DNA of 64,000 nucleotides, taken from positions 286,867 to 350,866 of the IMG/VR virus record IMGVR_UViG_3300024259_002152; one strand, given 5' to 3'. The stretch's first letter is position 1, and every line of letters begins with the position of its first letter. The translations under genes and the position numbers were made by a program. Below the pieces are notes generated by a model, which worked only from the letters and a program-made list of their open reading frames with translations, was not told the origin of the DNA and did not search any database. This document shows positions 1,193 through 64,000 of this stretch, piece by piece.

Positions 1193-1981
1193 ATGATAGG
1201 TTCCATAATAGGCGATGTAATTGGTTCTCCTTATGAGGGGAGAAGGATGAATTTCTTTGATTATGATTTCCCTCTCTTTAATGAAAGATCTACATTTACA
1301 GATGATACTATACTAACTGTTGCTACAGCTAAAGCTATACTTGAAGATATTCCTTACAAAGATGTTTATCTTGAGTTTGGTAGAAAGTATAAACGTAAGG
1401 GTTATGGTGGAGCTTTTGAAGCATGGTTATGTTCTGATGATCCTCAACCTTATGATAGTTGGGGAAATGGTTCTGCTATGAGGGTGGGCCCTATAGGTTT
1501 TTATTTTGACGAAGATGATGAAATCTTAAAAGAAGCAAAAGCAAGTTCAGAAGTAACTCATAATCATCCACATGGAATAGACGGTGCTCAAGCAATAGCT
1601 TTAGCTATTCATCATGCTAAAATAGGAGACAGCAAAGAACAGATAAAAAAAATTGTTTTTGCTGTGACTGGTTATTATGATTTGAATAAAACTGTAGATG
1701 ATTATAGAAAGAATTATAAGTTTGATACTAGTTGTAAAGTAACTGTTCCCCAAGCATTAACTGCCTTCTTTGAATCTGATAGTTTTGAAGATTGTATTAG
1801 AAAGGCAGTTTTAATGGGGGGAGATACAGATACGCTGGCGTGTATAGCAGGGTCAGTAGCAGAAGCATATTATAAGATTATTCCTAATAATATTAGCATG
1901 AAAGCTTTAGAAAAACTACCTGTAGAATTTTCAATTATAATAAATCGTTTTTATAGGGAAGTTTTAGAAGGAAATATATGA
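1193..1981 (+). CDS. ADP-ribosylglycohydrolase (DraG/ARH family)
   Basis: GDVIGSPYE, FTDDT, SWGNGSAMR, THNH, GGDTDT motifs. Confidence 0.93.
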   Translation: MIGSIIGDVIGSPYEGRRMNFFDYDFPLFNERSTFTDDTILTVATAKAILEDIPYKDVYLEFGRKYKRKGYGGAFEAWLCSDDPQPYDSWGNGSAMRVGPIGFYFDEDDEILKEAKASSEVTHNHPHGIDGAQAIALAIHHAKIGDSKEQIKKIVFAVTGYYDLNKTVDDYRKNYKFDTSCKVTVPQALTAFFESDSFEDCIRKAVLMGGDTDTLACIAGSVAEAYYKIIPNNISMKALEKLPVEFSIIINRFYREVLEGNI

Positions 1982-2673
1982 TGCTGATTACTGTCATTGC
2001 AGATATGCATGGAAATTTGAAGTTTAAAGTTCCAGAAACGGATTTGCTTTTGATAGCGGGAGATATATGTCCAGCTTCTCATGATCGTTATATATCTATT
2101 GGTATGCAAAGAACATGGTTGGAAAACAAATTTAAAAAATGGATTTATGAACAACCTGTTGATCATGCTATTGCTATAGCTGGAAACCATTGTTGGATAT
2201 GGGAATGTGCTGAAAGTGAAGTTCCTATATGGTTTCCTAAAAATTGTGTCGATAAAGAAATGGTGGAGGATAATAAGATTGAATATATAGAGGACTTTTT
2301 AGTTTTCTATAAGGATTTAAAAATATATGGGACTCCTGTTCAGCTTTCTTTTAATAATTGGGCTTTTAATCGGGAAGAAGAATCACTACAAAAGTATTGG
2401 GATAATATCCCTGAAGGACTAGATATACTTCTTCTACATAGTCCTCCATATGGAATATTAGACCAAACTCATCATCCTAAATATCCTTCTAAGCGTATAG
2501 GTAGTAAAAGTTTGTTAAAAAGAATAAAACAGGTTAAACCTAAACTGGTAGTTTTTGGTCATAATCATGGAGACCATGGGGTGGTTGAAGAAGATGGTAT
2601 TAAGTATATTAATGCTTCTTTAATTGACGAGCATTATAAAATGGTAAGAAAACCGATTGTTATAGAAATATAA
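1978..2673 (+). CDS. calcineurin-like metallophosphoesterase
   Basis: DMHG, AGD, GNH, HSPP, GHNH motifs. Confidence 0.9.
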   Translation: MMLITVIADMHGNLKFKVPETDLLLIAGDICPASHDRYISIGMQRTWLENKFKKWIYEQPVDHAIAIAGNHCWIWECAESEVPIWFPKNCVDKEMVEDNKIEYIEDFLVFYKDLKIYGTPVQLSFNNWAFNREEESLQKYWDNIPEGLDILLLHSPPYGILDQTHHPKYPSKRIGSKSLLKRIKQVKPKLVVFGHNHGDHGVVEEDGIKYINASLIDEHYKMVRKPIVIEI

Positions 2674-49021: not shown

Positions 49022-49067
49022 TTTATTAGTGTTTTAGAAATAAGTAGCACCGAATCGGAGTAATATT

Positions 49068-49304: not shown

Positions 49305-49318
49305 AAAAACTGTTTTTT

Positions 49319-49393
49319 ACTCCTGTAGCTCAATTGGATTAGAGCATCTCCCTTCTAAGGAGAAAGTTAGGGGTTCGAGTCCTCTCAGGAGTG
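49319..49393 (+). tRNA. tRNA-Arg(TCT)
   Basis: Loop CTTCTAA. Confidence 0.93.
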
Positions 49394-49603
49394 TTTTTCT
49401 CTATTTTTCACTTTTCCCGAAAAATATAAATCTTTATTACAAAGGAAGTTATAGAGAATTTTTAATATTTATAACAGGAAAATAGTGAATTTACTTGATT
49501 ATTCTTTCACTTTTGACTATATTATACATAGTCATATGACAAGTGTAGTAGTTAGTAAATGTTAACCTAAGTAGTATGTGGCAGAGCCACGGAGGTAACA
49601 ACA

Positions 49604-50026
49604 ATGCAAAGTGTTCAAGTAGGTAAGGAAGCCTCACGAACTGGTAGTGAGTCTTATATCCAGACCTACCAGAACCTGTTGAGGCAAAAAGAGCGTATTG
49701 ACAGGAATCTGATGAAGCTTCAGAGCAAATTATTAAGGGCTATGGCTGGTCAAAAGCCAGTCAGTAGTCCTGCGAAATATGTTTCGAGGCTTCCCAACAC
49801 GACCATTTTGGTCAGAGCTATTAGAGAGTGTATGACTCCGAATAAAGAGATGACTATGAGTGACATTCTAGAATCTCTTCATAAAAAGGATTTGTATCAC
49901 ACTCAGAGCCAGTATTTCTATACGATGGTTAATAATAAACTTAACCGTGATAGTCTTATTCATAAGGTTCGTCGCGGTGTCTTTATGTTTAAACCTCGCA
50001 GAAAAAAAGGAAGTGCTGTGGCATAA
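49604..50026 (+). CDS. coiled-coil plus winged-helix-like DNA-binding protein
   Basis: GGAGG RBS; MTMSDILESL...KVRRGVF. Confidence 0.6.
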   Translation: MQSVQVGKEASRTGSESYIQTYQNLLRQKERIDRNLMKLQSKLLRAMAGQKPVSSPAKYVSRLPNTTILVRAIRECMTPNKEMTMSDILESLHKKDLYHTQSQYFYTMVNNKLNRDSLIHKVRRGVFMFKPRRKKGSAVA

Positions 50027-50050
50027 AAATCTAAAAACATTTAAGTTTTT

Positions 50051-50094
50051 AATGCCCAGTCTTCTTAGGAAACAGGATGATTGGGCATTTTTTT
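50051..50094 (+). terminator. intrinsic terminator
   Basis: AATGCCCAGTC/GATTGGGCATT plus T tract. Confidence 0.7.
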
Positions 50095-50210
50095 ATACTT
50101 TTTTCCTAAAATTGGGAAAAAAAGACTTGCAAAAGTAGGGAAAGTGTGTAGAATACTGGGGTCATGTGAGAGGCATGTATATTTTACACCTATGGATAAT
50201 GGAGATTATT

Positions 50211-50483
50211 GTGGAGCAAAGCGAAAGGACCAAGAACACCTACAGATTAAGATGTGAGAAGATAGTCAACGAATCATGGTCAAAAGTTGAGGAGCATGTA
50301 AATGAGATTATGAAAGCATTAGAGAAAGATATTCTTGATGAGAGAGATATTTTACTTTTAAGGCTTGCTTCTGGGGCTTTTGTTCAGAGAGTTCAGTTAA
50401 ATCAGTTAGAAAGTGATGAGCTTTTTCAGATAGATCCTAACGAGGGTCGTCGAGATAAAGATCTTGATCTTGATGTTTGTTAA
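50211..50483 (+). CDS. hypothetical protein
   Basis: GGAG RBS, GTG start. Confidence 0.6.
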   Translation: MEQSERTKNTYRLRCEKIVNESWSKVEEHVNEIMKALEKDILDERDILLLRLASGAFVQRVQLNQLESDELFQIDPNEGRRDKDLDLDVC

Positions 50484-50557
50484 GCTCCTGTAGTCTAATA
50501 GGATAGGCACTGGTTTCCTAAACCAGATATATGCAGGTTCGAGTCCTGTCAGGAGTA
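50484..50557 (+). tRNA. tRNA-Arg(CCT)
   Basis: Loop TTCCTAA. Confidence 0.92.
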
Positions 50558-50560
50558 TAA

Positions 50561-50635
50561 GTCCCTATCGCCTAATTGGATATGGCACTCCGCTACGGAC
50601 GGAGAATAGTGTGGGTTCGAATCCTACTAGGGATA
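50561..50635 (+). tRNA. tRNA-Arg(ACG)
   Basis: Loop CTACGGA. Confidence 0.92.
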
Positions 50636-50640
50636 TTGCT

Positions 50641-50712
50641 AGGTCGTTGGTGAAATTGGTATCATTGGACTCTCCAAAAGTTCGGTTCAGGGTTCGAGTC
50701 CCTGGCGACCTG
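50641..50712 (+). tRNA. tRNA-Trp(CCA)
   Basis: Loop CTCCAAA, G73. Confidence 0.9.
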
Positions 50713-50786
50713 TTAAAATTCCAGACAATGAGTTTGTAGAAATGGTAGTAGTATAGCACCGAATCCTTTTTTAGCGGAAAAAATAA

Positions 50787-50981
50787 ATGACAATTACAGA
50801 GCTGTATAAAAAATTAGGAAATATGGTAAAACATGGCTTAGGAGATGAGTCAGTAAAGATATCTATTCCTTTTAGAGATGGAATAGGTATTCATTATGAA
50901 GATATTGTGAATGTTACTACTCATGATGGGATAGTAGATATACATACTACTGTGTCAGAATATGATGATGTGAAAAAATGA
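50787..50981 (+). CDS. hypothetical protein
   Basis: MTITELYKKL phage-type start. Confidence 0.6.
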   Translation: MTITELYKKLGNMVKHGLGDESVKISIPFRDGIGIHYEDIVNVTTHDGIVDIHTTVSEYDDVKK

Positions 50982-50987
50982 ATAGAA

Positions 50988-51061
50988 GCCCACGTAGACC
51001 AATCGGCAGAGTCATAGCATTTAAAATGCTAGTAGTGGTGGTTCGAGTCCACTCGTGGGTA
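50988..51061 (+). tRNA. tRNA-Leu(TAA), short variable loop
   Basis: Loop TTTAAAA. Confidence 0.9.
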
Positions 51062-51077
51062 TTAAAATACTAGATAG

Positions 51078-51150
51078 GCCCAGGTGACCCAATGGCAGAG
51101 GTGAACGTTTCAAAAGCGTTTTGTTGGTGGTTCGAGTCCACTTCTGGGTA
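51078..51150 (+). tRNA. tRNA-Leu(CAA), short variable loop
   Basis: Loop TTCAAAA. Confidence 0.9.
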
Positions 51151-51952: not shown

Positions 51953-52168
51953 ATGGAAATGAAGAATCTTAAAACAATGAAGATAGAAAAAGAGCATATG
52001 CAATATTATGCTTCTGAAATTGTTGATAAGAGTGTCTCAAAAGGAGATATTTTTAAAGTAGTTAGAAAGGTTCAATCTGAGGCTAAAGAGAATGGAATTT
52101 ATCTATCTAATTGTGCTGATCTCTATTGGTTCTTGATAGAGTGTAGGGAGAAAATTCCAGACAAGTAG
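51953..52168 (+). CDS. hypothetical protein
   Basis: Ends in the TTCCAGACAA motif (KIPDK). Confidence 0.6.
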   Translation: MEMKNLKTMKIEKEHMQYYASEIVDKSVSKGDIFKVVRKVQSEAKENGIYLSNCADLYWFLIECREKIPDK

Positions 52169-52239
52169 TTTTTAGAAATGGTGTAGTGTTGTTAGTGTGT
52201 TCAGAGAAGTAAAATAACATTTCTTAGAGAGGTTAAACC

Positions 52240-53910
52240 ATGTCTGTTACAGAAGTTATAACAGAAACAAGACAGTTGGGAATGCACCCAAAACTCTTAA
52301 TGGATACTATTCAGAGGCAAGCAGGAAGTCTCCAAAAGGCTAATCTTGAAGGAGTCATGAATGCTATTGAGGCAGGCAGTCCTGAAGTTAGAATTAAGTT
52401 AGTAGTAGATGATGGCAAGGCTCTGCTTTCCATAGAGGATGATGGAAAAGGCATTGAAAATGAGCAAGAGATTTATGATTTTTTTGAGATTTTTGGCACT
52501 CCTCACGATGAGAGTGAGAATATGATATGGAAGCAATTCCGTATGGGTCGTGGGCAAATGTTTGCCTATGGCAGAAATACGTGGAGAACATCAACATTCA
52601 AAATGATTGTTGATATTAAGCACAAAGGGCTGGATTACGAATTGCAAAAGGGATTACCTTTTGTTAATGGGTGTCAGATTGACATTGAGTTGTATAGGAA
52701 TCCTATTGGTTCTTCCCATAATAGTATGGATTCTTATAAAGAAATGATTACGGAGCAAGTTAGATTCATGGAAGGAAGAGTCCTGTTTAATGAGGAGCAA
52801 ATAAATCTTCCTGCTTCTGAATGCAAATGGGATTTTGAAGATGATGATGCTTATTATCTGTTTAATGCTGGCTTAGATTTTAAGATTTATAATCTTGGAG
52901 CATTCGTCACAAAACCTTGGAATATAGGTATGAGTGGTATTGCTGTTTCTAAGCAACAGTTGGTAGTAAATTTTGCCAGAAATGATGTTCAGGATGATTG
53001 TGAAGTATATTGCAGAATGAAAAAGGTTATTCGAGAGAATCGTATTAAAACGACTCGTCGGACTCGGAGAACCTTGACTACTTCTTTAAGATTTGCTACT
53101 CTTAGAGATTTGAGAGATAATACTCAAGATATTAAAGGTATTCAGAGTTTGTCTCTTATTCCAACTGCTCAAGGAAGGCATATCTCTCTTAGTGATATAA
53201 GAAAGGTAAAGCAACAATGGTGTTTTGCTCCTCAGGGAGATAGACGTGCTGATAAGATGATGGAGAGAGGTGATGCTTTATGTATTTGTCAAGACCTTTT
53301 GGTTGATTTGGGATACACGGGCATACCTGAAATGTTTTTTGTATGGCTCACTCATACTGAGCAGTGGCGTTATGGCAATAATATATGGGAAGATATTGCT
53401 AAACTATACGTTGATTTTGAAGATTTGACAAGCAATATGTCTGACTCTTATGTTGTTTTGCCTGATAAAAAACAGACAGTAACAGAGAGAAGAATTATTA
53501 CAGTTCTTCAAAAGATGGCATGTTGGAATCAAAGACGTATTCTCCTGGGTTCCTCTGATACAGCCGCGGCTTGGACAGATGGTAGCACCTATATCTGTAT
53601 TGACCGCACTTGGCTGAAAAGCAAACATCTTACTTGTGGCACTCATATTAATCAACTCTTGATGACAATGGCTCATGAAATGGCTCATGATATTGATACA
53701 AGAGGCACTCATTATCATGGTCCTGAGTTCGATAGGAATATGATACAAATATTAGAATCTGATAGTTCTCCTACTTGTTGGGCAGCTAATTTCTGCCATA
53801 ATATGAGTAAGAGTCGGATAGAGGAAAGAAGAGTAAAAGAAGCTCAGCAACAGGAGAAAGCAAAGCATAAAGTTAATAAAAAATTAGGTATTGCGGCAAA
53901 AGAAAAGTAA
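52240..53910 (+). CDS. GHKL (HATPase_c) ATPase with C-terminal HExxH motif
   Basis: EGVMNAIEA, IEDDGKG, FRMGRGQ; AHEMAH...HGPEF. Confidence 0.8.
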   Translation: MSVTEVITETRQLGMHPKLLMDTIQRQAGSLQKANLEGVMNAIEAGSPEVRIKLVVDDGKALLSIEDDGKGIENEQEIYDFFEIFGTPHDESENMIWKQFRMGRGQMFAYGRNTWRTSTFKMIVDIKHKGLDYELQKGLPFVNGCQIDIELYRNPIGSSHNSMDSYKEMITEQVRFMEGRVLFNEEQINLPASECKWDFEDDDAYYLFNAGLDFKIYNLGAFVTKPWNIGMSGIAVSKQQLVVNFARNDVQDDCEVYCRMKKVIRENRIKTTRRTRRTLTTSLRFATLRDLRDNTQDIKGIQSLSLIPTAQGRHISLSDIRKVKQQWCFAPQGDRRADKMMERGDALCICQDLLVDLGYTGIPEMFFVWLTHTEQWRYGNNIWEDIAKLYVDFEDLTSNMSDSYVVLPDKKQTVTERRIITVLQKMACWNQRRILLGSSDTAAAWTDGSTYICIDRTWLKSKHLTCGTHINQLLMTMAHEMAHDIDTRGTHYHGPEFDRNMIQILESDSSPTCWAANFCHNMSKSRIEERRVKEAQQQEKAKHKVNKKLGIAAKEK

Positions 53911-53969
53911 ATGTAAAGCATTAAGAGAACAGGAGTTATAAAAAATATCTCCTGTTTTCTATTTTTTTC

Positions 53970-53997
53970 TTGACAGCAAAGTGAAAGTAAGTATAAT
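53970..53997 (+). promoter_or_regulatory. sigma70-type promoter
   Basis: TTGACA-16-TATAAT. Confidence 0.7.
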
Positions 53998-54042
53998 GAT
54001 GGCACCAAAAGTGATAATATAAACAAATGAAAGGAATGTCAG

Positions 54043-54336
54043 ATGTATAGAGTAATAATTCTTGTAGGGATAGTGATAGGTATAATATATCTTGTTGTTA
54101 AATTGGTGAGAAGCCCGAAGTTCGACAAGTTTTGTAAAGATCTTTCTGAAGGCAAGGTGGAGGAAGATGTGGCACCGAAAGAGACTATCAAAGAGATTAC
54201 TCAGGCTGAGATAGAATTGAATAGAGTAGCAAAAGAAAATCAACGTAAAGCTGAAAAACTTACTGCTGAGGGTGGAAGTATTAACAAATTTTTAGAAAAA
54301 CGGGGTGTGGTTAAGCCGAAGAAGGAGGATAGTTAA
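54043..54336 (+). CDS. TM plus coiled-coil protein
   Basis: N-terminal TM; upstream of SPFH gene. Confidence 0.7.
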   Translation: MYRVIILVGIVIGIIYLVVKLVRSPKFDKFCKDLSEGKVEEDVAPKETIKEITQAEIELNRVAKENQRKAEKLTAEGGSINKFLEKRGVVKPKKEDS

Positions 54337-54418
54337 TGAAATAAGCTATGGAGGTTGTTTGTAGTATAGTAGATAGTGTGGTAAGAAACAAATATTAATT
54401 TTTGAATTGGAGTAAACA

Positions 54419-55756
54419 ATGAGTCCGAAACAGATTGTAATTGCAGTAATTGTGGTAATAGCTATCGCTCTTGTAGGGTCGCTATTCATGGGAATGGTGT
54501 CCGTTAATGACGGTCAGAATTGGGTCTACCTTCAGCATCTGAGCGGTAAGGTGGTTATTGTTGATGAGCCTGGTGTGTATTGGAAATTCTTTGGCACTGA
54601 TTGGGTATATCCTCGTTATATCGAATTTCGATATAATGACGATCCTGAGGACGGAGATTTAGCTAAAGAATCTATTCAAGTCACATATAATGATGGTGGT
54701 ATGGCAGATATTTCTACCTATATCCGTTTAGCAACTCCATCGACCCAAAAGCGACGTATTGCTTTTCATGAGCAATTTGGCGGAAATAAGGATAATATTA
54801 AAGCTTCTACCAAATCATATATGATTGATTGTTTACAATCGACAGCACCGATTATGAGTTCCTCTGAGAATCAGTCGGCACGAAAGGCTGAGTTTAGGCA
54901 GGTTGTAGAAGGACAATTGAAGTATGGCACATATAAAATGCGTAAAGAAATAATTGTTCAGAAAGACACAACTGACGCGACTGGGAAGGGTATTACTATT
55001 TTCAAGACAGAGATTATCAATGATGCAGACGGCATGCCTATTGTCGTTACTAGATCTCCTATTGCCGAAGATTTTGGTATGACCGTTGTTCAATTCTCGG
55101 TTACCGACACCGATTATGATCCTGAGACTCGTAAGCAATTTGCGGCCAAGAAGGCATCTTTTTTGCTTACAGAGCAGGCTAAGGCAGATCGTGAGAAAGA
55201 AACTCAAGAACGTCTAATGGTTATTGAGAGAGGTTTGAAGGAGAAAGCCATCGAGACTGCTAAAGCGAATGTGTTAAAAGCTAAGGCAGTTATCGCGGGA
55301 GAGTTGAAAGCCGAAGTTGCACTTCAAACTAAACTTGAAGCTGAGACCAAGGCTGCCCAGAAGCTATCGGTTGCCGAGATTAACAAACAAGAGCAGTTGA
55401 TGATTGCAAGTGCTAAGCTTGAAGTAGCTCAGATTAAAGCTAAGGAAGCTGAGCAAGAAAAGGTTGCAGCAATTTTGAGGGCTGAAGGCAAAAAAGAAGC
55501 TATTCAGTTGTCGGGGGCCATAACTGAATTGGAACAGGCGATGATCGATGCTGAAGTTGAGAAGGCAAGGGTTGTTTCCGAAGCATTAGCAAAGATCAAG
55601 GTTCCTTCGACAATGATTATCGGTGGTGGTGAAGGAAAAGGTAATACCCTTATGGAAAACCTGATCAATATGAAACTTATGACTGATACAGGTATTCTGA
55701 ATAAGACTGATATCAATGCCTCCGATGTCGATCGTAGGGTTGACAGGACAAAGTGA
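54419..55756 (+). CDS. SPFH/band 7 (flotillin-like) protein
   Basis: N-terminal TM, EPGVYWK, AEA-rich coiled coil, VPSTMIIGGG. Confidence 0.82.
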   Translation: MSPKQIVIAVIVVIAIALVGSLFMGMVSVNDGQNWVYLQHLSGKVVIVDEPGVYWKFFGTDWVYPRYIEFRYNDDPEDGDLAKESIQVTYNDGGMADISTYIRLATPSTQKRRIAFHEQFGGNKDNIKASTKSYMIDCLQSTAPIMSSSENQSARKAEFRQVVEGQLKYGTYKMRKEIIVQKDTTDATGKGITIFKTEIINDADGMPIVVTRSPIAEDFGMTVVQFSVTDTDYDPETRKQFAAKKASFLLTEQAKADREKETQERLMVIERGLKEKAIETAKANVLKAKAVIAGELKAEVALQTKLEAETKAAQKLSVAEINKQEQLMIASAKLEVAQIKAKEAEQEKVAAILRAEGKKEAIQLSGAITELEQAMIDAEVEKARVVSEALAKIKVPSTMIIGGGEGKGNTLMENLINMKLMTDTGILNKTDINASDVDRRVDRTK

Positions 55757-55785
55757 CACCTATGACCTCCATGGGTTATTTAGCG

Positions 55786-55835
55786 AACCCCCTTATTGTT
55801 TGAATAGTTATATTTAGATAGTAAGGGGGTTTTTT
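55786..55835 (+). terminator. intrinsic terminator
   Basis: Long hairpin AACCCCCTTATT/AGTAAGGGGTT plus T tract. Confidence 0.75.
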
Positions 55836-55906
55836 ATTAAAATTCCAGACAATGAGTTTTAAGTTATTATAGAATGTAAACAATAACTTTTTGTCGGAGA
55901 AATAAA

Positions 55907-56740
55907 ATGTCGAAACCTATCGGAATCATCTTGTGGCAAGGGAAATCCCTAATAGACAATGAGAGAATAGCGGTAATCGCTACAGGGATTGGTAGAGAAT
56001 CGGAAAACAGAAAAACAGGGGATATGATTCAAACCTACATTATTCGTAGGGATATTCACCCAATGTTGGCACGACGGATGGGAGAGGACAAAAGTATTTG
56101 TGGGGATTGCAAACATAAAGAAGGTAGCACATGCTATGTTAATCTCTGTCATGGTCCTATTGGGGTGTTCCATGCTCTGATTGATGGTAGTTATCGACCG
56201 TATGGGGATAAGGATATTGAGCTATTCCGAGACCGTTTCTTCAGAATTGGTTCTTATGGGGACCCTGCGGCGGTACCATATGAAGTATGGGAGAATATTT
56301 GCAGTGTTGCTAAGGGATATACTGGTTATACTCATCAGTGGAAAAACTGCGATCAAAGACTGAAAAACTATTGTATGGCAAGTGTTGATAGTATCAAGGG
56401 TTATATGAAGGAATATAATCAAGCTCAAGCAATGGGCTGGAGGACTTTCAGAATCAGAGAGAATGAAGATAATGTTTTGATGGAAAATGAAATGATTTGT
56501 CCTGCTAGTAAAGAAGCAGGGGCATTAACTACTTGTGAGCAGTGTAATCTATGTGGTGGTTTGAATAGGGCTAATGGTAGAAACCCTGTTATAATGCTCC
56601 ATGCCGATAGTGAAGCAATGGGTAGCATGTGGCGTCGTGATAGATATATCAAGATGATGAAAAAGATCAAAAACAAAAAAGCATGGCGTAGGAATTACAA
56701 AGCAGAACGTAAAGAATTTAAGAAGGTGTGTAGATTCTAA
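55907..56740 (+). CDS. Cys-rich phage protein (gp88/radical-SAM-like fold suspected)
   Basis: NRKTG, CGDC...CYV, RIGSYGDP, GYTHQW, CPAS...CEQCNLC. Confidence 0.6.
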   Translation: MSKPIGIILWQGKSLIDNERIAVIATGIGRESENRKTGDMIQTYIIRRDIHPMLARRMGEDKSICGDCKHKEGSTCYVNLCHGPIGVFHALIDGSYRPYGDKDIELFRDRFFRIGSYGDPAAVPYEVWENICSVAKGYTGYTHQWKNCDQRLKNYCMASVDSIKGYMKEYNQAQAMGWRTFRIRENEDNVLMENEMICPASKEAGALTTCEQCNLCGGLNRANGRNPVIMLHADSEAMGSMWRRDRYIKMMKKIKNKKAWRRNYKAERKEFKKVCRF

Positions 56741-56802
56741 TTTCCAGACAATGCGTTTGTTATAATGATAGATTGTAGTAATAACTTTTTTGGAGAAATA
56801 AA

Positions 56803-56967
56803 ATGACATTTACAATTGAAATCAATGCAAAAACAATTGAAGAGGCTACCTTAGTGGTTGAGAAGGGTATAAAGAGGGGTGATTTTCAACCATTTATAAC
56901 AATGGAAAATGATAAGGGTCGGGTAGTGGTTCAGGCGGATACAGTGAAATTTAGTTCGGAGAAATAA
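56803..56967 (+). CDS. hypothetical protein (54 aa)
   Basis: GGAGAAATAAAATG start. Confidence 0.55.
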   Translation: MTFTIEINAKTIEEATLVVEKGIKRGDFQPFITMENDKGRVVVQADTVKFSSEK

Positions 56968-56968
56968 A

Positions 56969-57343
56969 ATGTCCGATAGTGAGAAAAACAACGGTCCTTG
57001 GTATGTGTATTGTCAAACTTGTAAAGAGCTTATAGGAAAATGTAATAGTGTAGAAATTGCTTTTGCGATAGAACATGAACATAAAGAATCTGTAGGGACT
57101 AAATGCTGCGTTATTACAACTGGGATAAAGTGGTATTTCGATAATGCTTTTCCCGATATAGAGTTGGAACCTAGCGCTGTCCTTATCACTGTTAGTGGGG
57201 GAGTAGCAGAAGTAGTAGATCAACCCTTTGGAGTTAAGGTAGAGATTAGAGATTATGATGTCGAAGAGCCTGATGCAGAGAATAGTGATAATTGCAAACA
57301 AGACGATGATGGGAATTGGTATCAAGAAATAATATGGAAGTAA
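56969..57343 (+). CDS. hypothetical protein
   Basis: GGAGAAATAAAATG start; VSGGVAE...IRDYD. Confidence 0.7.
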   Translation: MSDSEKNNGPWYVYCQTCKELIGKCNSVEIAFAIEHEHKESVGTKCCVITTGIKWYFDNAFPDIELEPSAVLITVSGGVAEVVDQPFGVKVEIRDYDVEEPDAENSDNCKQDDDGNWYQEIIWK

Positions 57344-57383
57344 TCAAAACAACAACCATTGATCAATTACAGGAGTAACAACA

Positions 57384-58160
57384 ATGGGAACCAGAGGTAA
57401 GAAAATTTGTGAATGTGGCACCGAAGTAGGGGCAAGAACTCGTGTATGTTCTTGTGGTTATGAATTTTATGAGAAGAGAGTCGCTGAGCCTAAAAAGGTA
57501 GAAGTAGTTGAACAATCCCCAGGTGAAGGTAGGAAACAATGTTCTTGTGGTTTCTTTATGAACTCAAGAATAAAGTTCTGTCCTACTTGCAATGAAAGAG
57601 TGGTTTGCAAACCAAAAGAGCGCAAAGCTATAGAGCAAGTCCCAGGTCCTGGTAGAAAACAGTGTGCTTGTGGGGTGTTTGTAGCTTTGAGAATCAAAAT
57701 TTGTCCTTCTTGTAATCAGGAGATTGTTACTAAACCCAAAGAGCCAAAAGAAGTTAAGCCAGTAGAGCAGTCCCCAGGGATAGGTAGAAAACAATGTGTT
57801 TGTGAGTTGTTTGTTGGGGGAAGAACAGGTATTTGTCCGTCGTGTGGTCATGTTTTTGTTCCTGGCGAAAGGCAAGAAAGAGAGAAGAAAGAAAGAGCAG
57901 CAAGAAAGGCAGAAAAGGCTGAGATTCAGAGACCTATGACTCGAGCTGAGAAATTTACTCAGCAACTATTAAAACAGTTTTATGATAATCCTCCAGAAGT
58001 GTTGGAAATGAAGGGTTTAACTGCTGATGATCATGCCCATCGGGTATTGGGACTAGGTGAGGAAAGAGCTGGGATTTTACTTTTTCAGCACAAAACCAAA
58101 CAAGGAGAAAGTTGGTCCCATGTTAATTGGAAACTTGTTGAAGAGCAACTAACCAAATAA
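57384..58160 (+). CDS. zinc-ribbon repeat protein
   Basis: Four G(R/K)KxCxC...RxxxC(P)xC repeats. Confidence 0.75.
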   Translation: MGTRGKKICECGTEVGARTRVCSCGYEFYEKRVAEPKKVEVVEQSPGEGRKQCSCGFFMNSRIKFCPTCNERVVCKPKERKAIEQVPGPGRKQCACGVFVALRIKICPSCNQEIVTKPKEPKEVKPVEQSPGIGRKQCVCELFVGGRTGICPSCGHVFVPGERQEREKKERAARKAEKAEIQRPMTRAEKFTQQLLKQFYDNPPEVLEMKGLTADDHAHRVLGLGEERAGILLFQHKTKQGESWSHVNWKLVEEQLTK

Positions 58161-58221
58161 TTCCAGACAACGCGTTTATTACTTTGATAGGTTGTAATAT
58201 CAACTTTTTGGAGAAATAAAA

Positions 58222-58401
58222 ATGGCAATAGACAGAACAAAGAACACCACAATAATAGTGAATAAAGAGGATATTGATAGTCCCGATCACCCTAACTTGT
58301 GGAGTAGTTGGCTAGACACTTTGGGGATAGACCCAGAAGCCACAGAAATCTGTTTGAGAAGGTCTTCTTTGGACCACAATAGAAATGATGATAGGGAGTA
58401 G
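58222..58401 (+). CDS. hypothetical protein (59 aa)
   Basis: GGAG RBS after TTCCAGACAA element. Confidence 0.55.
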   Translation: MAIDRTKNTTIIVNKEDIDSPDHPNLWSSWLDTLGIDPEATEICLRRSSLDHNRNDDRE

Positions 58402-58403
58402 TT

Positions 58404-59735
58404 ATGTCAGCGATAACAGAACATAAGAAATGTATTTGTGTAGAATTTGGAGATACTAACAACAACAAGGTATGGCAATATACTTTGTATGATGATGACA
58501 CTGCCTTAACAGAGTGGGGGAGAGTTGGGAAAGGTCTACAAAGTAAGATAACAAGTCATTCTCAGGCTCTTAAAAAGTGGAGAGAAAAAACCAATTCCAA
58601 TAACAAACCCGACAAAATGTATACTGAAGTAAAAGCAGTTGATACGGGGGGTTCTGTTTCTGTCGGCTCTGTTAAAAATGCAGAATTGAAAGATGTTGCT
58701 AAGAAACAGATTAAATCTAAAAATCCTGTTATTGCACAACTTATTGATTTTCTTGTTCAAGTCAATGCCCATCAGATTTTGAAACAATCGGGTGGCAAGA
58801 TCATGTATGATGCAAACTCCGCACAATTCAAAACACCACTCGGAGTTATTGACCCAGTGCAAGTAGCAGAAGCTAGAGATTTGCTTGTTATGATTTCTGA
58901 TTTTGTAAAGGCTGAGGACTTTGATAATAAAGAATTTGGTAGGATTCTTAATTCCTATCTTAGACTTATTCCTCATGATGTAGGAATGTCTAAGATTTCT
59001 ACTGGACGAATATTTCCTAATACTCAAACAGTTATTGCAGAGAATGATTTGCTTGATGGTTTGGAAACTTCCTTTATTGATATTACGACAAAGCCGACAA
59101 AGAAGAAAACCAAAAAGAAAGATGCTCCACAAATTTTTAATGTTGAAATGGAGATTGTAAGTGATAAGCAAATCTTGTCTCATGTCAAGCACCTTTATCA
59201 ATCGACAAGAAAGAGTATGCACCAATCTAACAATCTTTCTGTTCAAACAGTTTATGCTGTAACGATCAAGAACATGAAAGATGGATATGATAAGCATGGT
59301 GCTAAGATGAGTAACATTTGGCAGTTGTGGCACGGAACAAAGGCAAGTAATCTTTTGTCTATTATGAGGCAAGGTTTGATTATTCCTTCTTCCAGTTCTG
59401 GTCATGTGACAGGTCGAATGTATTCCGATGGGGTGTATTTTTCTGACATTAGTACTAAAGCACTGAATTATGCTACGAACTACTGGGGAGGTGGAGGCAA
59501 TACTGATAAAACGTTTATGTTTTTGGCGGACGTAGCGATGGGTAATTACCATATCGCCAAAAGTAGTTGGACTAAATATCCTATTCCTGGTTCGGATAGT
59601 ACATGGGCGAAAGGCAGAGATAAAGGGGGAGTTAATTCTGGAGTGGTCAACGATGAAATGATAGTATATCGTCTTGATCAGTGTAATCTTGTTTATTTGG
59701 TAGAATTTGTGCCAAATTCTCAGCTTAGAACATAA
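58404..59735 (+). CDS. WGR-domain poly(ADP-ribose) polymerase (PARP)-like protein
   Basis: NNNK...EWGRVG; YLRLIPH regulatory domain; LWHGT, GRMYSDGVYFS, KALNY, DEMIVY. Confidence 0.9.
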   Translation: MSAITEHKKCICVEFGDTNNNKVWQYTLYDDDTALTEWGRVGKGLQSKITSHSQALKKWREKTNSNNKPDKMYTEVKAVDTGGSVSVGSVKNAELKDVAKKQIKSKNPVIAQLIDFLVQVNAHQILKQSGGKIMYDANSAQFKTPLGVIDPVQVAEARDLLVMISDFVKAEDFDNKEFGRILNSYLRLIPHDVGMSKISTGRIFPNTQTVIAENDLLDGLETSFIDITTKPTKKKTKKKDAPQIFNVEMEIVSDKQILSHVKHLYQSTRKSMHQSNNLSVQTVYAVTIKNMKDGYDKHGAKMSNIWQLWHGTKASNLLSIMRQGLIIPSSSSGHVTGRMYSDGVYFSDISTKALNYATNYWGGGGNTDKTFMFLADVAMGNYHIAKSSWTKYPIPGSDSTWAKGRDKGGVNSGVVNDEMIVYRLDQCNLVYLVEFVPNSQLRT

Positions 59736-59803
59736 ATAAAGGATTTTTATTTGTATATTAGAATATATACTTCATAACAAGAATTATATATGGAGTATAT
59801 AAA

Positions 59804-60610
59804 ATGAGTAAATATCCTTTATTAGATAACAAAGAATGGCTTTATAGTAAGTATATTCAAGAATATCTTGGTTTTAGAGCGATATGTAAATTAGTAGGAG
59901 CACAAAGCACTAATTCTGTTAGACAATCATTAATAAAGCACTCTATTCCAATTAGAACTATTGGAGATGGTATCAGAATTAATAGAGTAGATGATGGTTT
60001 TATTATTAACAAAGAAGTTATAGAAGGTTGTTTATTAGGAGATGGTTTCTTATGTAAGTGGAATAAAAAAAATGATAATTCTTTTCCTTATTTCGCGAAA
60101 AGAAATAAATATTATGATCATATAATATATGTTTCTAGAATTCTTTTTGGTAATAAGTGGAAGGAAAGGACAAAAGAGAATGATGAAAAAAGTTTAGGAA
60201 AAAGACATGTAGTATTTACTTTAAGAAGTTTGTCAAATAAGCTTTTACAATCATTTTATAAAAGGTGGTATCCTGAGTGGAATAATTATAAAAAAGTAAT
60301 ACCTGATGATATTGATATAACACCAACATTACTACTACATTGGTTTTTAGATGATGGTAATTCTTACCAAAGAAGAAAAAATAGTAGCACCAAACAAATA
60401 GTTATAACTCTTTGTAGTGAATGCTTTAATAAAGATGATCAACAAATGATAGTGGAAAAAATAAACTACATTTTTGGTTTAGTTTGCACTTTGAAGAAGG
60501 TTAATTATGGCACTGGATATCAGATACGTATTCCTCAATCTCAAGCATCTTTGTTTTATGATATTATAGGTCCTTGCCCTGTTCCAAGTATGAAATATAA
60601 ATGGAAGTAA
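59804..60610 (+). CDS. free-standing LAGLIDADG homing endonuclease
   Basis: GCLLGDG and WFLDDG motifs. Confidence 0.87.
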   Translation: MSKYPLLDNKEWLYSKYIQEYLGFRAICKLVGAQSTNSVRQSLIKHSIPIRTIGDGIRINRVDDGFIINKEVIEGCLLGDGFLCKWNKKNDNSFPYFAKRNKYYDHIIYVSRILFGNKWKERTKENDEKSLGKRHVVFTLRSLSNKLLQSFYKRWYPEWNNYKKVIPDDIDITPTLLLHWFLDDGNSYQRRKNSSTKQIVITLCSECFNKDDQQMIVEKINYIFGLVCTLKKVNYGTGYQIRIPQSQASLFYDIIGPCPVPSMKYKWK

Positions 60611-60685
60611 AATTCCAGACAATGAGTTTCTTAAAACAATAGAGTAGTTACGAATAAAAACTAATAATTTTACGGAGAAACAAAA

Positions 60686-61270
60686 ATGTGTACGACAGCA
60701 ACAGCATCTTTAATTGTTGAGACTATTGAGAAATTTTGCCAGGACGATGATGTTTTTACTGCTTTTGATATTACGAAAGAAGTAAGAGCAAAAACTTCTG
60801 AGCGTATTTCTCATAATGATGTAAGAAGAATTGTTGTTAATGAACTCGCTCCAAATGCTGATTACGACAAAGATCTTTGTGTTCTTAATGTGCCGAGCAA
60901 TCCAACTGCTTTGGTTTATTTTCCTGATGGAAAATCTGCCACGGACCATCCTTTGGTCTCTGCTGGCACTGTTGTCGATGATGGGACTGATGTTGATGAT
61001 GACGATGATGACGAGGAGGATGATAATAACGATTTAGCAGATGATGAGTATGAACTTACGTCGGAAGGTAGGGTTGAAATTCCTAAGACCATATTGACTC
61101 AAGTGACTGCTAATGCAGGTAGTTACGACATTTTGGTCAAAGGATCGTTGAAATGTGTAACACCGAATGCTGATGGTCGTGTCAGGGTATGCTTGAAACA
61201 GATGGGTATTAGTGATAAGGTGACATTATCGGTAGATTCGACTAATAACACTATCAACATTACGAGTTAA
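60686..61270 (+). CDS. putative DNA-binding protein with acidic linker and tandem AbrB/MraZ-like C-terminus
   Basis: FTAFDIT N-terminus; LTSEGRVEIP and NADGRVRV repeats. Confidence 0.55.
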   Translation: MCTTATASLIVETIEKFCQDDDVFTAFDITKEVRAKTSERISHNDVRRIVVNELAPNADYDKDLCVLNVPSNPTALVYFPDGKSATDHPLVSAGTVVDDGTDVDDDDDDEEDDNNDLADDEYELTSEGRVEIPKTILTQVTANAGSYDILVKGSLKCVTPNADGRVRVCLKQMGISDKVTLSVDSTNNTINITS

Positions 61271-61354
61271 CAACAGTTTCTGTTTGGAGGAGCAGGTTGA
61301 CAATTTCCGTCGTCTTCCTGCTCCTCATTTTTCAAAATGGTATAAGGAGTAAAT

Positions 61355-61546
61355 ATGTATCTTTTAAGGTTCCATGATAGAGAGGAGTTGTCAGATATGA
61401 GAATTTCTGATCACATAGAAACTTTGAAGGCATTTGCTCGGAACGATATAGATGGAGAGTTGCAATTCAAAGGATTTTTTGATATAGTTTCTGTCAATTG
61501 TAAGGGACAAGAGATAGGGATTATTGGGGAAGTGACTGAAATATAA
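61355..61546 (+). CDS. hypothetical protein
   Basis: AAGGAG RBS. Confidence 0.6.
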   Translation: MYLLRFHDREELSDMRISDHIETLKAFARNDIDGELQFKGFFDIVSVNCKGQEIGIIGEVTEI

Positions 61547-61574
61547 GAAGTTGTGTAGCATTTTATTTCTCTGT

Positions 61575-61610
61575 AGGGAGTAGGCGTGGTTTCCTACTCC
61601 CTTATTTTTT
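61575..61610 (+). terminator. intrinsic terminator
   Basis: AGGGAGTAGG/CCTACTCCCT plus T tract. Confidence 0.75.
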
Positions 61611-61630
61611 CTAGACAATGAGGTTGTTAT

Positions 61631-61936
61631 ATGAGAATTCAAACAGAAGTAGAGCATATATTTAGAGTTTTTGTATATTGTCCGAAAGGACATAAAGTTA
61701 AAGGACATTCTGAATGGATATTTTCTCATCCAAAATGTATTTCATGTCAAAAAAGAAAACATGAGGGCAAAACTTTTTTCAGAATAGATTTTTTAGGTGT
61801 TGCCCCACAGGACAGGGTTAAAATAAGAAAATATTGTAGAGACCAATTAAGAGAATATTATGAAAAATATATCATTATGAACAGGAAAAAGGAAAATAAT
61901 TCCAGACAACGTGTTTCTCAGAATGGTATAGTGTAG
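61631..61936 (+). CDS. hypothetical protein
   Basis: CPKGH...CISC. Confidence 0.6.
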   Translation: MRIQTEVEHIFRVFVYCPKGHKVKGHSEWIFSHPKCISCQKRKHEGKTFFRIDFLGVAPQDRVKIRKYCRDQLREYYEKYIIMNRKKENNSRQRVSQNGIV

Positions 61937-61966
61937 CACTGATTAAAACTCTTTTGGAGAAATAAA

Positions 61967-62278
61967 ATGAACCAGATACCTGAATTAAAATCCTACCAGG
62001 ACAATGAGATCAAAGAGGGAAGTGAATTTGCCAAGATGGTGGCAGATAAGATCAATAGTGGTTATGGGACTAGTAAGTTATTCCGAAAGGGATTTGCTGC
62101 CACTATAGCAGGTCCAAAGACCCACAATACAGTTCAGCAACTATTTTTTAAGTTGGTTCAAGAGTGTATTAAAGAAATGGCTAATGCTAGGTTTGTTGAT
62201 GGTCGAAACCAGGATAGTCATGAATTTGCAAAAGAGTGTTTGGATACAATAGAGAAGCACTGTTTGCCATATATCTAA
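61967..62278 (+). CDS. hypothetical protein
   Basis: HNTVQQ...DGRN...LPYI phage-type motif. Confidence 0.7.
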   Translation: MNQIPELKSYQDNEIKEGSEFAKMVADKINSGYGTSKLFRKGFAATIAGPKTHNTVQQLFFKLVQECIKEMANARFVDGRNQDSHEFAKECLDTIEKHCLPYI

Positions 62279-62294
62279 TTTTCGGAGAAATAAA

Positions 62295-62513
62295 ATGAGC
62301 AAAGAAACAAAAGCAGTCCAAAAGAAATGTTTTAATAAGTGTCCTAGATGTGAGGCTGGGATAAAAGATATTGAATATGTTGAATGGGGAGCATATGAAT
62401 GCTCAGGAGAGACAATCATACAAAAGGCTGTATGTAAACAATGTGGACAAGAATTTACAGAGAATTATGTCTATTCTTACTCTGAGATAGAATTTGAGGT
62501 AGAAACAAAATGA
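62295..62513 (+). CDS. zinc-ribbon protein
   Basis: CPRC...CKQCG. Confidence 0.65.
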   Translation: MSKETKAVQKKCFNKCPRCEAGIKDIEYVEWGAYECSGETIIQKAVCKQCGQEFTENYVYSYSEIEFEVETK

Positions 62514-62689
62514 CTGTTAAAGAACTAATAGACGAACTTTCACAAATGCCTATGGACACAAAGGTTGTAACTACAGAATATGCAAGCCCCGAGGATTCTG
62601 TACCGTATGTAAAAGATATAACGGAACCAATGTATCATAAAAATGGTATTTTAGGAACACATGGAGAGCCAGTTGTAGATATCTCATAA
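62510..62689 (+). CDS. hypothetical protein (paralog A)
   Basis: MTVKELIDELSQMPMD. Confidence 0.6.
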   Translation: MTVKELIDELSQMPMDTKVVTTEYASPEDSVPYVKDITEPMYHKNGILGTHGEPVVDIS

Positions 62690-62757
62690 TAATTCCAGAC
62701 AATGAGTTTCTTATTATGATATACTGTAAACAATAACTTTTTTGTCGGAGAAATAAA

Positions 62758-62928
62758 ATGACTGTTAAAGAACTAATAGAGGAACTTTCTCAACTACCTA
62801 TGGATGCACAAGTTATAGCAACTGTGCGTGGAGGTGATAGTTCGTATTCGGATTATATTAGCACTACAGTATGTCACGAGAAAGGTCTTGCAGGAATTAC
62901 TGAAGAAACAGTTGTGGAAATAGATTAG
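62758..62928 (+). CDS. hypothetical protein (paralog B)
   Basis: MTVKELIEELSQLPMD. Confidence 0.6.
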   Translation: MTVKELIEELSQLPMDAQVIATVRGGDSSYSDYISTTVCHEKGLAGITEETVVEID

Positions 62929-62953
62929 TAGAACTTTTTTTTGGAGAAATAAA

Positions 62954-63511
62954 ATGAGTTTTGGTTCAACTGAAAGTATAAAAAAGATACTAGATAATCC
63001 ATGTCTTCCAGGTCTCCTAAAAACAGTAGAGGGAGATGCTACAGACCCCCAATTCATAAAATCGAATGAGATAGCTATCATTCCTCATTGTTGTAATAAC
63101 AAAGGACAATGGGGAAAAGGTTTTGTTCTAGCACTGAGCAAAAAGTGGAAAAGACCAGAGAGTATATATAGAAATTTTTGTAAAATACACCAAGAAGAAA
63201 ATATTTTGGGTAGGAATTGTTCTGCTAAAATAGATGATCATCTTGCTATTGTTAATATGATAGCTCAAGATGGGACTGTTTCGGAAGATAATCCTAAACC
63301 CATTAGATACAAAGCACTTGTGCAATGTATGACACGGGTAGTTGATTATATTGAAATGATAAAATCTCAGAATACTAATCCTATTGCTATACATTGTCCC
63401 AAGTTTGGAAGTGAACTCGCGGGCGGGACATGGTCTTTCATATTAGAGCTTATCCATGAAATATGGATAGATGCTGGTATCGATGTTGTAATCTATGAGT
63501 ATAAGGGTTAA
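62954..63511 (+). CDS. macrodomain protein (ADP-ribose processing)
   Basis: GDAT, IPHCCNNKGQWGKGF, CPKFGSELAGGTW. Confidence 0.88.
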   Translation: MSFGSTESIKKILDNPCLPGLLKTVEGDATDPQFIKSNEIAIIPHCCNNKGQWGKGFVLALSKKWKRPESIYRNFCKIHQEENILGRNCSAKIDDHLAIVNMIAQDGTVSEDNPKPIRYKALVQCMTRVVDYIEMIKSQNTNPIAIHCPKFGSELAGGTWSFILELIHEIWIDAGIDVVIYEYKG

Positions 63512-63515
63512 AAAA

Positions 63516-63821
63516 ATGAGTAATTATGTATTTGTAGATATTATCGAATGTCGAAAAATGTATGAGAGAAAAGATTCTGCATGGATATGTGTAAGAATGC
63601 AGGACGGTTACAGCACTGGGCAAGTGGATATTCCTACTGAAGATAGTGGAGTGAATATTTATGATAATCTGGGCATTTTAGAATGGTGTAAAGACTTTGG
63701 TTCAGATGATAGTGTAGAGATGGCTGATCTTATTGATTACATTATTGAGGAGGAATGCTCTGTTACTATTAACGGCACCGAGTATAGTTGGGATGAAATA
63801 AAGCACTTATTTGGAGAATAA
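63516..63821 (+). CDS. hypothetical protein
   Basis: Packed array. Confidence 0.6.
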   Translation: MSNYVFVDIIECRKMYERKDSAWICVRMQDGYSTGQVDIPTEDSGVNIYDNLGILEWCKDFGSDDSVEMADLIDYIIEEECSVTINGTEYSWDEIKHLFGE

Positions 63822-64000
63822 AATGCTTAATATAGCCTTAACGACAATATGTTTTGTGATAGCAGTAGCAACTACTTCCAGGGTTTATCATATGGCGATG
63901 AATAAAATAGAGGCTAGTGAAGCTACAGTAGGTATTTTATTATTCTCTTGGGGAGCATTTATGTTCTTATTTCTATTCTGTTTCAAGGTATGGTTATCAT

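Follow-up and report, generated by a model that had tools for sequence, protein, structure and literature searches.

A PARP-family gene and a conserved partner gene in a large phage: a candidate DNA-break-activated ADP-ribosylation module

The PARP gene and its domain architecture

The subject of this analysis is a gene for a PARP-family ADP-ribosyltransferase (ART) and its surroundings in the terminal 64 kb of IMG/VR virus record IMGVR_UViG_3300024259_002152, which has a length of 350,866 bp and a CheckV completeness of 73%. The whole 64,000-nucleotide (nt) stretch that was analyzed is referred to as the window, and the full virus record is labeled G000; other L, G, and H numbers (e.g., L015, G002, and H18) are working labels for compared loci or phage records. 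The window is about 33% G+C, almost all of its genes are on the plus strand, and its open reading frames (ORFs) were read under genetic code 11 only. Downstream of the PARP gene are a homing endonuclease gene, a gene for a protein that we refer to as the partner, and a macrodomain gene, and an ADP-ribosylglycohydrolase (ARH) gene is located near the start of the window (Table 1). The record represents a marine jumbo phage; its stretch carrying the PARP and partner genes had matches in the seawater metagenomes of more than 20 separate studies. Because a megablast search of positions 52000 to 64000 against the phage collection produced no match, we concluded that there is no close cultured relative at the DNA level.

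Table 1. Positions of the PARP gene, its domains, and other features in the window
Feature	Position	Strand	Basis or remark
PARP-family ADP-ribosyltransferase, 443 amino acids (aa)	58404..59735	+	Pfam, PDB alignment, AlphaFold2 (AF2) model, residue conservation
WGR domain, motif W38-G39-R40	58404..58643	+	aa ~4-76; sub-threshold Pfam match, fold, conservation
PARP_reg, the autoinhibitory helical domain (HD)	58776..59123	+	PF02877; HD spans aa ~100-240
PARP catalytic (ART) domain	59178..59735	+	PF00644; aa ~245-443
LAGLIDADG homing endonuclease, free-standing	59804..60610	+	PF03161, 70.3 bits; between PARP and partner
Conserved PARP partner, 194 aa	60686..61270	+	Neighborhood clustering, hidden Markov model (HMM) iteration, AF2 model
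Macrodomain, SCO6735/BT1257 subclass (TARG1/ALC1 branch), candidate eraser	62954..63511	+	PDB profile matches
ADP-ribosylglycohydrolase, ARH3-like	1193..1981	+	PF03747, ARH3 alignment
Calcineurin-like metallophosphoesterase	1978..2673	+	Overlaps ARH stop by 4 bp
Terminator-like hairpin, 10-bp stem and T run	61575..61602	+	After partner and one small ORF; consensus scan
Terminator-like hairpin	55785-55832		Consensus scan

An original prediction, made from the letters of the window alone, had described a phage-encoded protein with the WGR, helical regulatory, and catalytic layout of PARP2 and PARP3. The ORF was present exactly as described and lies within a virus record, and all of the motifs that had been quoted were found (YLRLIPH at aa 185 to 191, LWHGT at aa 308 to 312, KALNY at aa 352 to 356, and DEMIVY at aa 417 to 422). 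In Pfam searches for the three domains, the catalytic domain (87 bits; cut-off, 26.7; aa 259 to 412) and PARP_reg (33 bits; cut-off, 26.8; aa 125 to 240, profile positions 19 to 127 of 135) scored above the cut-off, but the WGR domain, with 16.9 bits, was below its cut-off of 22. Close relatives of the window PARP passed the WGR profile (PF05406). Within the WGR motif, G39 was invariant and R40 was present in 86 of 88 homologs (43 of 45 from phages and 43 of 43 from bacteria).

When the protein was compared to the PDB with phmmer, aa 19 to 389 aligned with WGR-HD-ART chains of PARP2 and PARP1, with E values of about 1e-17 to 1e-18 (PARP1, 1.9e-18), and the LIPHD motif aligned with the PARP1 HD. 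The AF2 model, which had a predicted local distance difference test (pLDDT) score of 72 and a predicted template modeling (pTM) score of 0.67, superposed over its full length on PARP1 WGR-CAT at a DNA double-strand break (4dqy_C; TM score of 0.67 over 485 columns) and also on PARP2/HPF1 complexes. Residues 1 to 70 had pLDDT values of 76 to 94, and the linker at aa 81 to 95 was disordered. Given the PF05406 matches of the relatives, the superposition on PARP1 and PARP2, and the conservation of G39 and R40, we accepted the WGR-HD-ART layout; the PARP2/3-type arrangement was thus borne out by Pfam, the PDB alignment, and the AF2 superposition. With a catalytic domain, an H-Y-E triad, PARP_reg, and WGR, the window protein is, as judged from its sequence, a member of the DNA-dependent clade of PARPs (ARTDs).

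Seven catalytic-domain residues (H310, G311, Y345, K352, Y356, N416, and E418) were invariant in an alignment of 45 phage and 43 bacterial homologs at 33 to 80% identity, a pattern first seen in 22 relatives. By alignment, they correspond to PARP1 residues H862, G863, Y896, K903, Y907, Y986, and E988, respectively. The intact H-Y-E triad that had been predicted was found (H310, Y345, and E418), but the assignment of the KALNY tyrosine to the triad was not upheld. The triad tyrosine is Y345 in GVYFS (PARP1 Y896). Y356, in KALNY, corresponds to PARP1 Y907, the second of the tyrosines that stack on nicotinamide. We also asked whether A353, at the position of PARP1 S904, might inactivate the enzyme, and we rejected this possibility because both Ser and Ala are widespread at this position in the family.

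The three-domain order of the window PARP is the same as that of human PARP2 and PARP3 and of PARP1 WGR-CAT, and the catalytic H, G, Y, Y, and E residues align. In contrast, the window PARP is about 20% identical to the human PARPs and lacks an N-terminal extension, zinc fingers, and a BRCT domain. Compared to PARP1, its loop before the catalytic Glu is about 20 residues shorter, Y986 is replaced by an invariant Asn, and S904 is replaced by Ala.

A word-indexed protein search yielded 1,255 homologs at E ≤ 1e-5, and the best 120 of these were 52 to 80% identical to the window PARP. Several homologs were on contigs of 100 to 394 kb. In IMG/VR, a full-length homolog was present on at least 37 contigs, a dozen of which were 300 to 476 kb. 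In a tblastn search of the cultured-phage collection, PARP genes were detected in Xanthomonas phages XacN1 and Xoo-sp13, Stenotrophomonas phages CM1/RAS14, three Klebsiella phages, and Cellulophaga phages, and the search also found them in two uncultured megaphages. Several of the matched genes had already been annotated as poly(ADP-ribose) polymerase. The annotated PARPs of XacN1, Xoo-sp13, FBKp34, Cellulophaga phi4:1 and phi17:2, and Aeromonas Aeh1 are homologous to the window PARP, with 31 to 37% identity. Furthermore, phage PARPs were listed by Perina et al. in 2014 (Aeh1 and phi4:1; PMC4245714), and PARPs were noted in a few jumbo phages by Iyer et al. in 2021 (PMC7824862). The novelty implied by the original prediction was therefore overstated, since phage PARPs had been annotated and surveyed; the window PARP itself is a further member of a known, functionally uncharacterized class. 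A literature search for a functional study of phage PARPs found none.

In phage loci, the PARP gene was located among early/middle nucleic-acid metabolism genes, and RNA ligases, topoisomerase, non-specific endonuclease, and homing endonucleases were recurrent neighbors. Full-length bacterial WGR-PARP homologs (L048 to L094; 35 to 40% identity) were concentrated in Armatimonadota/Chthonomonadales and in Pleurocapsales cyanobacteria.

A conserved partner gene linked to the PARP gene

The strongest association of the PARP gene, which had gone unremarked in the first reading of the window, is with the partner gene. When all ORFs located up to 10 kb from PARP in 40 phage loci were grouped by unbiased clustering, the partner was the commonest neighbor. 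An iterated HMM search placed it in 20 of the 40 loci, always on the same strand as PARP. In 18 of these 20 loci, the partner gene was 1 kb or less downstream of PARP, and in several it abutted or overlapped the PARP stop codon. Searches of whole records, specifically of 24 phage records that carry PARP and are 100 kb or longer, found the partner in 16, including two in which it was 11 to 14 kb downstream.

The association was also recovered from the opposite direction. A search that started with the partner independently identified 21 homologous proteins, none with a Pfam domain, and a WGR-PARP was directly upstream of the partner in all seven contig look-ups. This search covered proteins of about 107 to 340 aa, so relatives that are fused or that consist of the N-terminal domain only are under-counted. 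The sole partner match in the phage database was in megaphage LR756511 (595 kb), where the gene is located downstream of PARP at a distance of about 1.6 kb.

The same pair was found in bacteria. The partner HMM matched 10 of 47 bacterial PARP loci (Armatimonadota, Blastocatellia, and Omnitrophota), mostly right after PARP. These loci had ordinary chromosomal contexts, and some of the proteins consisted of the N-terminal domain only. The PARP genes of Pleurocapsales were flanked by TetR, GST, and Uma2 genes instead of the partner. In a quick PARP tree, the partner was spread across most deep lineages; one well-supported 12-member clade, which includes Xoo-sp13, was without it. The cultured phages with annotated PARPs have no partner gene, whereas the clade of the window phage carries PARP, partner, and macrodomain. 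As far as the literature that we searched shows, the PARP-partner or PARP-partner-macrodomain arrangement is undescribed.

The partner had no family in Pfam or PHROG, and its AF2 model (pLDDT, 85.7) suggested a protein of two domains. The N-terminal domain (aa 1 to 83; pLDDT, 86 to 96) was modeled as three helices (aa 4 to 19, 26 to 36, and 43 to 54) and a beta-hairpin (aa 60 to 67 and 74 to 80). It resembled the winged helices of FUR, PadR, BrxR, and TFIIE with VIA Z scores of 5.4 to 7.1, a likeness at the level of fold to which no family was assigned, and an ESM Atlas search with this domain returned generic matches only, below 0.9. The best-conserved motif of the partner family is located in this winged-helix domain. 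A disordered linker follows (aa ~97 to 122), which is nearly all Asp and Glu in the window protein and acidic or rich in Ala, Pro, and Thr in relatives. The C-terminal domain (aa ~125 to 194) was modeled as all-beta and AbrB/B3-like. Its profile gave a weak AbrB match in the PDB (E = 0.0085 to 0.011), Pfam AbrB-like and MazE_antitoxin each matched one of 16 partner-family members (3e-4), and the best Foldseek matches were DNA-bound B3 pseudobarrels (E = 6e-3).

A complex prediction for PARP and the partner gave a score of 0.43, compared to 0.00 for the best of three controls, which weakly suggested that the two proteins bind each other. Of 80 solved complexes, 58 reached the mark used in this test, as did 2 of 110 mismatched pairs; at scores of 0.60 or less, only seven of the 80 solved complexes reached it, along with both of the mismatched pairs that passed.

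Candidate erasers and neighboring features

The original prediction had combined the PARP with a macrodomain and an ARH into a reversible writer/eraser circuit. The roles that it offered for this circuit in draining NAD or countering DarT-like defenses are speculative. Both eraser genes were confirmed. The macrodomain gave no Pfam match at E ≤ 0.1, PF01661 included, and was identified by its matches to the solved macrodomains of BT1257 (2afc/2fg1; E = 2e-28, with 2afc at 2.3e-28) and SCO6735 (5e3b; E = 3.1e-25); the match to the CHD1L/ALC1 macrodomain was weaker (E = 9e-6). The likeness to SCO6735 and BT1257 extends over the full domain, and the glycine-rich loops are conserved. The window macrodomain differs from them in that it is phage encoded, is not recognized by Pfam Macro, and has an activity that is predicted. 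SCO6735 belongs to the TARG1/ALC1 branch, is induced by DNA damage, and removes glutamate-linked mono-ADP-ribose in vitro (PMC8120803). The ARH had a PF03747 score of 133.9 bits (cut-off, 26.2) and metal-binding TDDT and DTDT motifs that aligned with those of ARH3, which was its best solved relative.

In the window, L004, L005, L015, L024, L043/44, L046/47, FBKp34, and L036, PARP and a macrodomain gene were no more than 10 kb apart. In the PARP tree, these loci represent five separate lineages: window/L005/L004, L024/L046, L015, FBKp34, and L036. In Klebsiella phage FBKp34, the gene is a macro-like "phosphatase" 2.4 kb upstream of PARP. In L015 (record G008), which has a PARP-partner-macrodomain array, the macrodomain is of a different, canonical PF01661 subtype and is located 177 nt after the partner. 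Because five lineages have a macrodomain no farther than 10 kb from PARP, and because the one in L015 is not orthologous to that of the window, we considered at least the PARP-proximal macrodomain to be probably coupled to PARP.

The ARH gene was never near PARP. It is 57 kb away in the window and 57 to 99 kb away in the clade of the window phage. The metallophosphoesterase whose gene overlaps that of ARH is probably co-translated with it. Both genes belong to a cluster at positions 3 to 2673 that starts with a T4 gp63-like RNA ligase gene, which is 5'-truncated at the window edge, and a 144-aa unassigned ORF; the arrangement of ARH and RNA ligase was conserved only in the closest relative, G002. 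A polynucleotide-kinase-like ORF is located at positions 27404 to 28417. The cluster may be an RNA-repair or ADP-ribose-processing set.

Among the 24 PARP-positive records, which were the only records included in these counts, ARH was found in eight, the macrodomain type of the window in 11, Pfam Macro in 13, and a bacterial-type PARG (PF10021) in one. At least one of these eraser types was present in 19 of the 24. No ARH, Macro, or PARG was detected in three complete PARP-positive phages (G005, G018, and G021). Since 19 records carry an eraser and three complete records carry none, erasers are frequent yet not obligatory. PARG (PF05028 and PF10021) was not found in G000, a record that is 73% complete, and the PF05028 control matched nowhere; NAMPT/NAPRTase was likewise not found in this incomplete record.

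These results divided the proposed circuit. The macrodomain was moderately supported as a component by its proximity to PARP in five lineages, but ARH was not supported, given its 57-kb distance, its presence in eight of 24 records, and its lack of conserved linkage. Obligate co-occurrence of the named erasers with PARP across phages did not hold; three complete phages have no eraser, and the macrodomain type of the window is mostly found in PARP-negative records. A role as dedicated eraser is plausible for the macrodomain in some lineages but not for ARH.

An alternative is that the erasers are counter-defense or metabolic genes unrelated to PARP, which would reverse host-imposed ADP-ribosylation (by DarT-like or other ART defenses), degrade ADP-ribose-derived signals, or serve RNA repair. 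Such roles have been proposed for the Macro domains of jumbo phages (PMC7824862), and the company of ARH, an RNA ligase and a phosphoesterase far from PARP, fits them. A second, canonical macrodomain (G000:20675-21016; PF01661, 131 bits) is located about 325 kb from PARP in the same genome. In addition, the macrodomain type of the window is directly beside Sir2 or ADP-ribosyltransferase-annotated genes in Streptomyces phages Annadreamy and Faust (H18 and H19), which suggests that the NAD-consuming writer with which it pairs varies from phage to phage. Set against this alternative are the five lineages with a PARP-proximal macrodomain, the non-orthologous macrodomain of L015 among them, and the retention of the ARH-RNA ligase arrangement only in the closest relative. 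As an explanation for all of the erasers, we consider it possible but doubtful; for ARH and the distal macrodomain it is likely to apply, and these two are more likely to be general ADP-ribose-processing genes than parts of a dedicated module.

The LAGLIDADG gene between PARP and the partner is a selfish element and is outside the functional module. In relatives, the PARP-partner gap is 0 to 800 nt. A GIY-YIG endonuclease gene fills it in L041/L042 (L041:3167-3862), and GIY-YIG genes flank PARP in four further loci (L006, L011, L020, and L034). The gap appears to be an insertion hotspot for selfish endonucleases, beside a gene whose predicted product would sense DNA breaks.

The two terminator-like hairpins may bracket one transcription unit that extends from the ORF at 55907 to a point shortly beyond the partner, so that the macrodomain would fall in the next unit. 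The scan was based on consensus only and found six hairpins compared to 3.5 expected. A scan for sigma-70 promoters was uninformative, with 31 sites found and 31.7 expected.

Several other features were observed near PARP. A short distance upstream of the window PARP (57384 to 58160) is a gene for a 258-aa protein with four tandem CxC...CPxC zinc-ribbon units, which are separated by Lys/Pro/Glu-rich spacers and followed by a helical tail. Its Pfam zinc-finger matches were weak, and it was not conserved near PARP in other loci. Between the partner and the macrodomain, two adjacent small ORFs (62510 to 62689 and 62758 to 62928; 59 and 56 aa) are clear paralogs with near-identical N termini (MTVKELI.ELSQ.PMD) and no family match for either. 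In relatives that have rIIB beside the locus (L046, L047, L095, and one more contig), a DUF3307 gene recurs 0.6 to 1 kb downstream of the partner; DUF3307 was sought among the small ORFs of the window and was absent. L047 and L095 also have a metallo-beta-lactamase-fold gene with a faint match to the Anti-Pycsar protein Apyc1 directly upstream of PARP, and another related contig has a NUDIX gene near the PARP locus.

Elsewhere in the window, a dense cluster of 31 tRNA genes at positions 41039 to 51150 covers most amino acids. It includes a two-base anticodon call (42263 to 42338), an unusually long (91-nt) tRNA-Met (44013 to 44103), and a tRNA-Ile(TAT), and the local G+C content reaches 41% at 42 to 46 kb, coinciding with the cluster. 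Two DNA methyltransferase-like genes (8260 to 9327 and 11946 to 13133) flank a helicase-like gene (10123 to 11877) and may belong to a set for anti-restriction or DNA modification.

A candidate ADP-ribosylation module and its alternatives

Our preferred interpretation, to which we assign a probability of roughly 0.55, is that the locus encodes a DNA-break-activated ADP-ribosylation module in which PARP would be the writer, the partner would be a DNA-binding adaptor or substrate, and the macrodomain would be an optional eraser. By analogy with PARP1 to PARP3 and with HaPARP of Herpetosiphon aurantiacus, the PARP2/3-like enzyme would become active when its WGR domain encounters DNA breaks or 5'-phosphorylated ends. 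Once activated, it would spend NAD+ to ADP-ribosylate itself and other targets. The partner, with its winged-helix and AbrB-like domains and flexible acidic linker, most likely binds DNA and would serve as a targeting adaptor and/or as the main acceptor, and ADP-ribosylation would change its hold on DNA. In several lineages, including that of the window phage, a macrodomain hydrolase encoded a few genes further on would reset the modification; Glu-linked ADP-ribose is removed by its solved relative. The phage would probably benefit by controlling DNA transactions or gene expression from the time when ends of host or phage DNA arise during infection.

The closest enzymes with activity data are HaPARP and CdPARP (Clostridioides difficile), which, like the window PARP, have WGR, helical, and catalytic domains and an H-Y-E triad. 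Both are active in vitro, HaPARP requires DNA, and the poly(ADP-ribose) made by each enzyme is removed by its cognate PARG (PMC8120803). The systems differ in two respects. The eraser of the bacterial enzymes is a bacterial PARG, which was not found in the 73% complete record of the window phage, and a winged-helix/AbrB partner, which the window phage has, is not described for them in the literature that we searched. The partner is also not HPF1-like, in contrast to the accessory factor of human PARPs.

Several observations weigh against the proposed module. Half of the PARP-positive phage loci (20 of 40) have no partner nearby and eight of the 24 PARP-positive records lack it entirely, which indicates that PARP can work without the partner. 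Divergent copies of the partner were sought within 3 kb of PARP in the partner-less loci and none was found, the best E value among 220 ORFs being 0.3. The winged-helix match is generic (Z of about 7), and the AbrB assignment is based on an E value of about 0.009. In the complex prediction, one of three runs scored 0.00, the contacts of the runs agreed at 0% or more, and the pLDDT of the partner was at least 69. Macrodomain linkage is found in a minority of PARP-first loci (7 of 40), and the macrodomain type of the window is present in 278 phage records, most of them PARP negative. No RNA run among the sequence runs that we searched contains the PARP-partner stretch. Finally, the H-Y-E triad alone cannot separate poly- from mono-ADP-ribosylation; PARP3 is a mono-transferase.

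The absence of the partner from half of the loci and from an entire 12-member clade also fits a stand-alone host-takeover enzyme. Such a PARP would resemble T4 Alt and Mod but make chains, and it would modify host RNA polymerase or other proteins; the downstream gene would be merely a syntenic phage transcription factor, and the erasers would serve other ends. This view has been offered for jumbo-phage PARPs (PMC7824862), and the placement of PARP among early/middle nucleic-acid metabolism genes agrees with it. Chance synteny, however, is difficult to reconcile with reciprocal linkage in seven of seven look-ups, with the same pair in bacterial chromosomes, and with frames that abut or overlap. 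Moreover, WGR and an autoinhibitory HD suggest DNA-end-dependent activation and not constitutive host modification. The T4 enzymes themselves differ in these respects. Alt, ModA, and ModB are phage-encoded NAD+-dependent ADP-ribosyltransferases, as the window PARP is predicted to be, but they are mono-transferases of the R-S-E (cholera-toxin-like) type, with host proteins as targets and no DNA-sensing domain (PMC8120803), in agreement with the R-S-E assignment of Alt and Mod in the original prediction, whereas the window PARP is of the H-Y-E (diphtheria/PARP-like) type with WGR and HD. We regard a stand-alone enzyme as unlikely.

A distinctly improbable explanation is that, as PARP1 to PARP3 do at the phosphate ends of DNA, the window PARP ADP-ribosylates DNA or RNA termini, which would shield phage ends or mark or block host fragments, with the mark removed by Macro and ARH3-type enzymes. 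The PARP2/3-like layout has no extra targeting domain, and the recurrent neighbors of PARP (RNA ligases, topoisomerase, non-specific endonuclease, and homing endonucleases) make or join ends. PARPs have been reported to ADP-ribosylate nucleic acids reversibly (PMC6582358). These neighbor functions, however, are typical of any phage early region, and the conserved partner would be unexplained unless it is an end-binding factor. Lastly, the occurrence of PARP genes among phages and bacteria is sporadic (PMC4245714) and the WGR score is sub-threshold, but an inactive or decaying horizontally acquired gene is very unlikely because the frame is intact, more than 1,000 homologs exist, and the H, G, Y, K, Y, N, and E residues are invariant over 88 of them at 33 to 80% identity.

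More tentatively, and with clearly less confidence than we place in the module itself, we suggest that PARP and the winged-helix/AbrB-like protein, which bacteria and large phages have in common, might be a two-component ADP-ribosylation switch of ancestral prokaryotic origin. DNA targeting, and perhaps an acceptor surface, would be supplied in trans by the partner. Sensing of ends by WGR would lead to ADP-ribosylation of the partner and to its release or re-targeting on DNA, phages would use the switch so that gene expression or DNA transactions coincide with the arrival of DNA ends during infection, and the macrodomain would be the reset. If so, the partner would provide in trans what eukaryotic PARP1 has in cis (zinc fingers and an automodification region) or borrows (HPF1 and histones).

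PARPs of phages and bacteria have appeared in catalogs for over a decade, and the only activity data are in vitro results for two bacterial enzymes. A tightly and reciprocally linked, family-less partner found in both phages and bacteria is a testable handle on the targets of prokaryotic PARPs, and it is relevant to the possible beginnings of the DNA-damage PARP system of eukaryotes.

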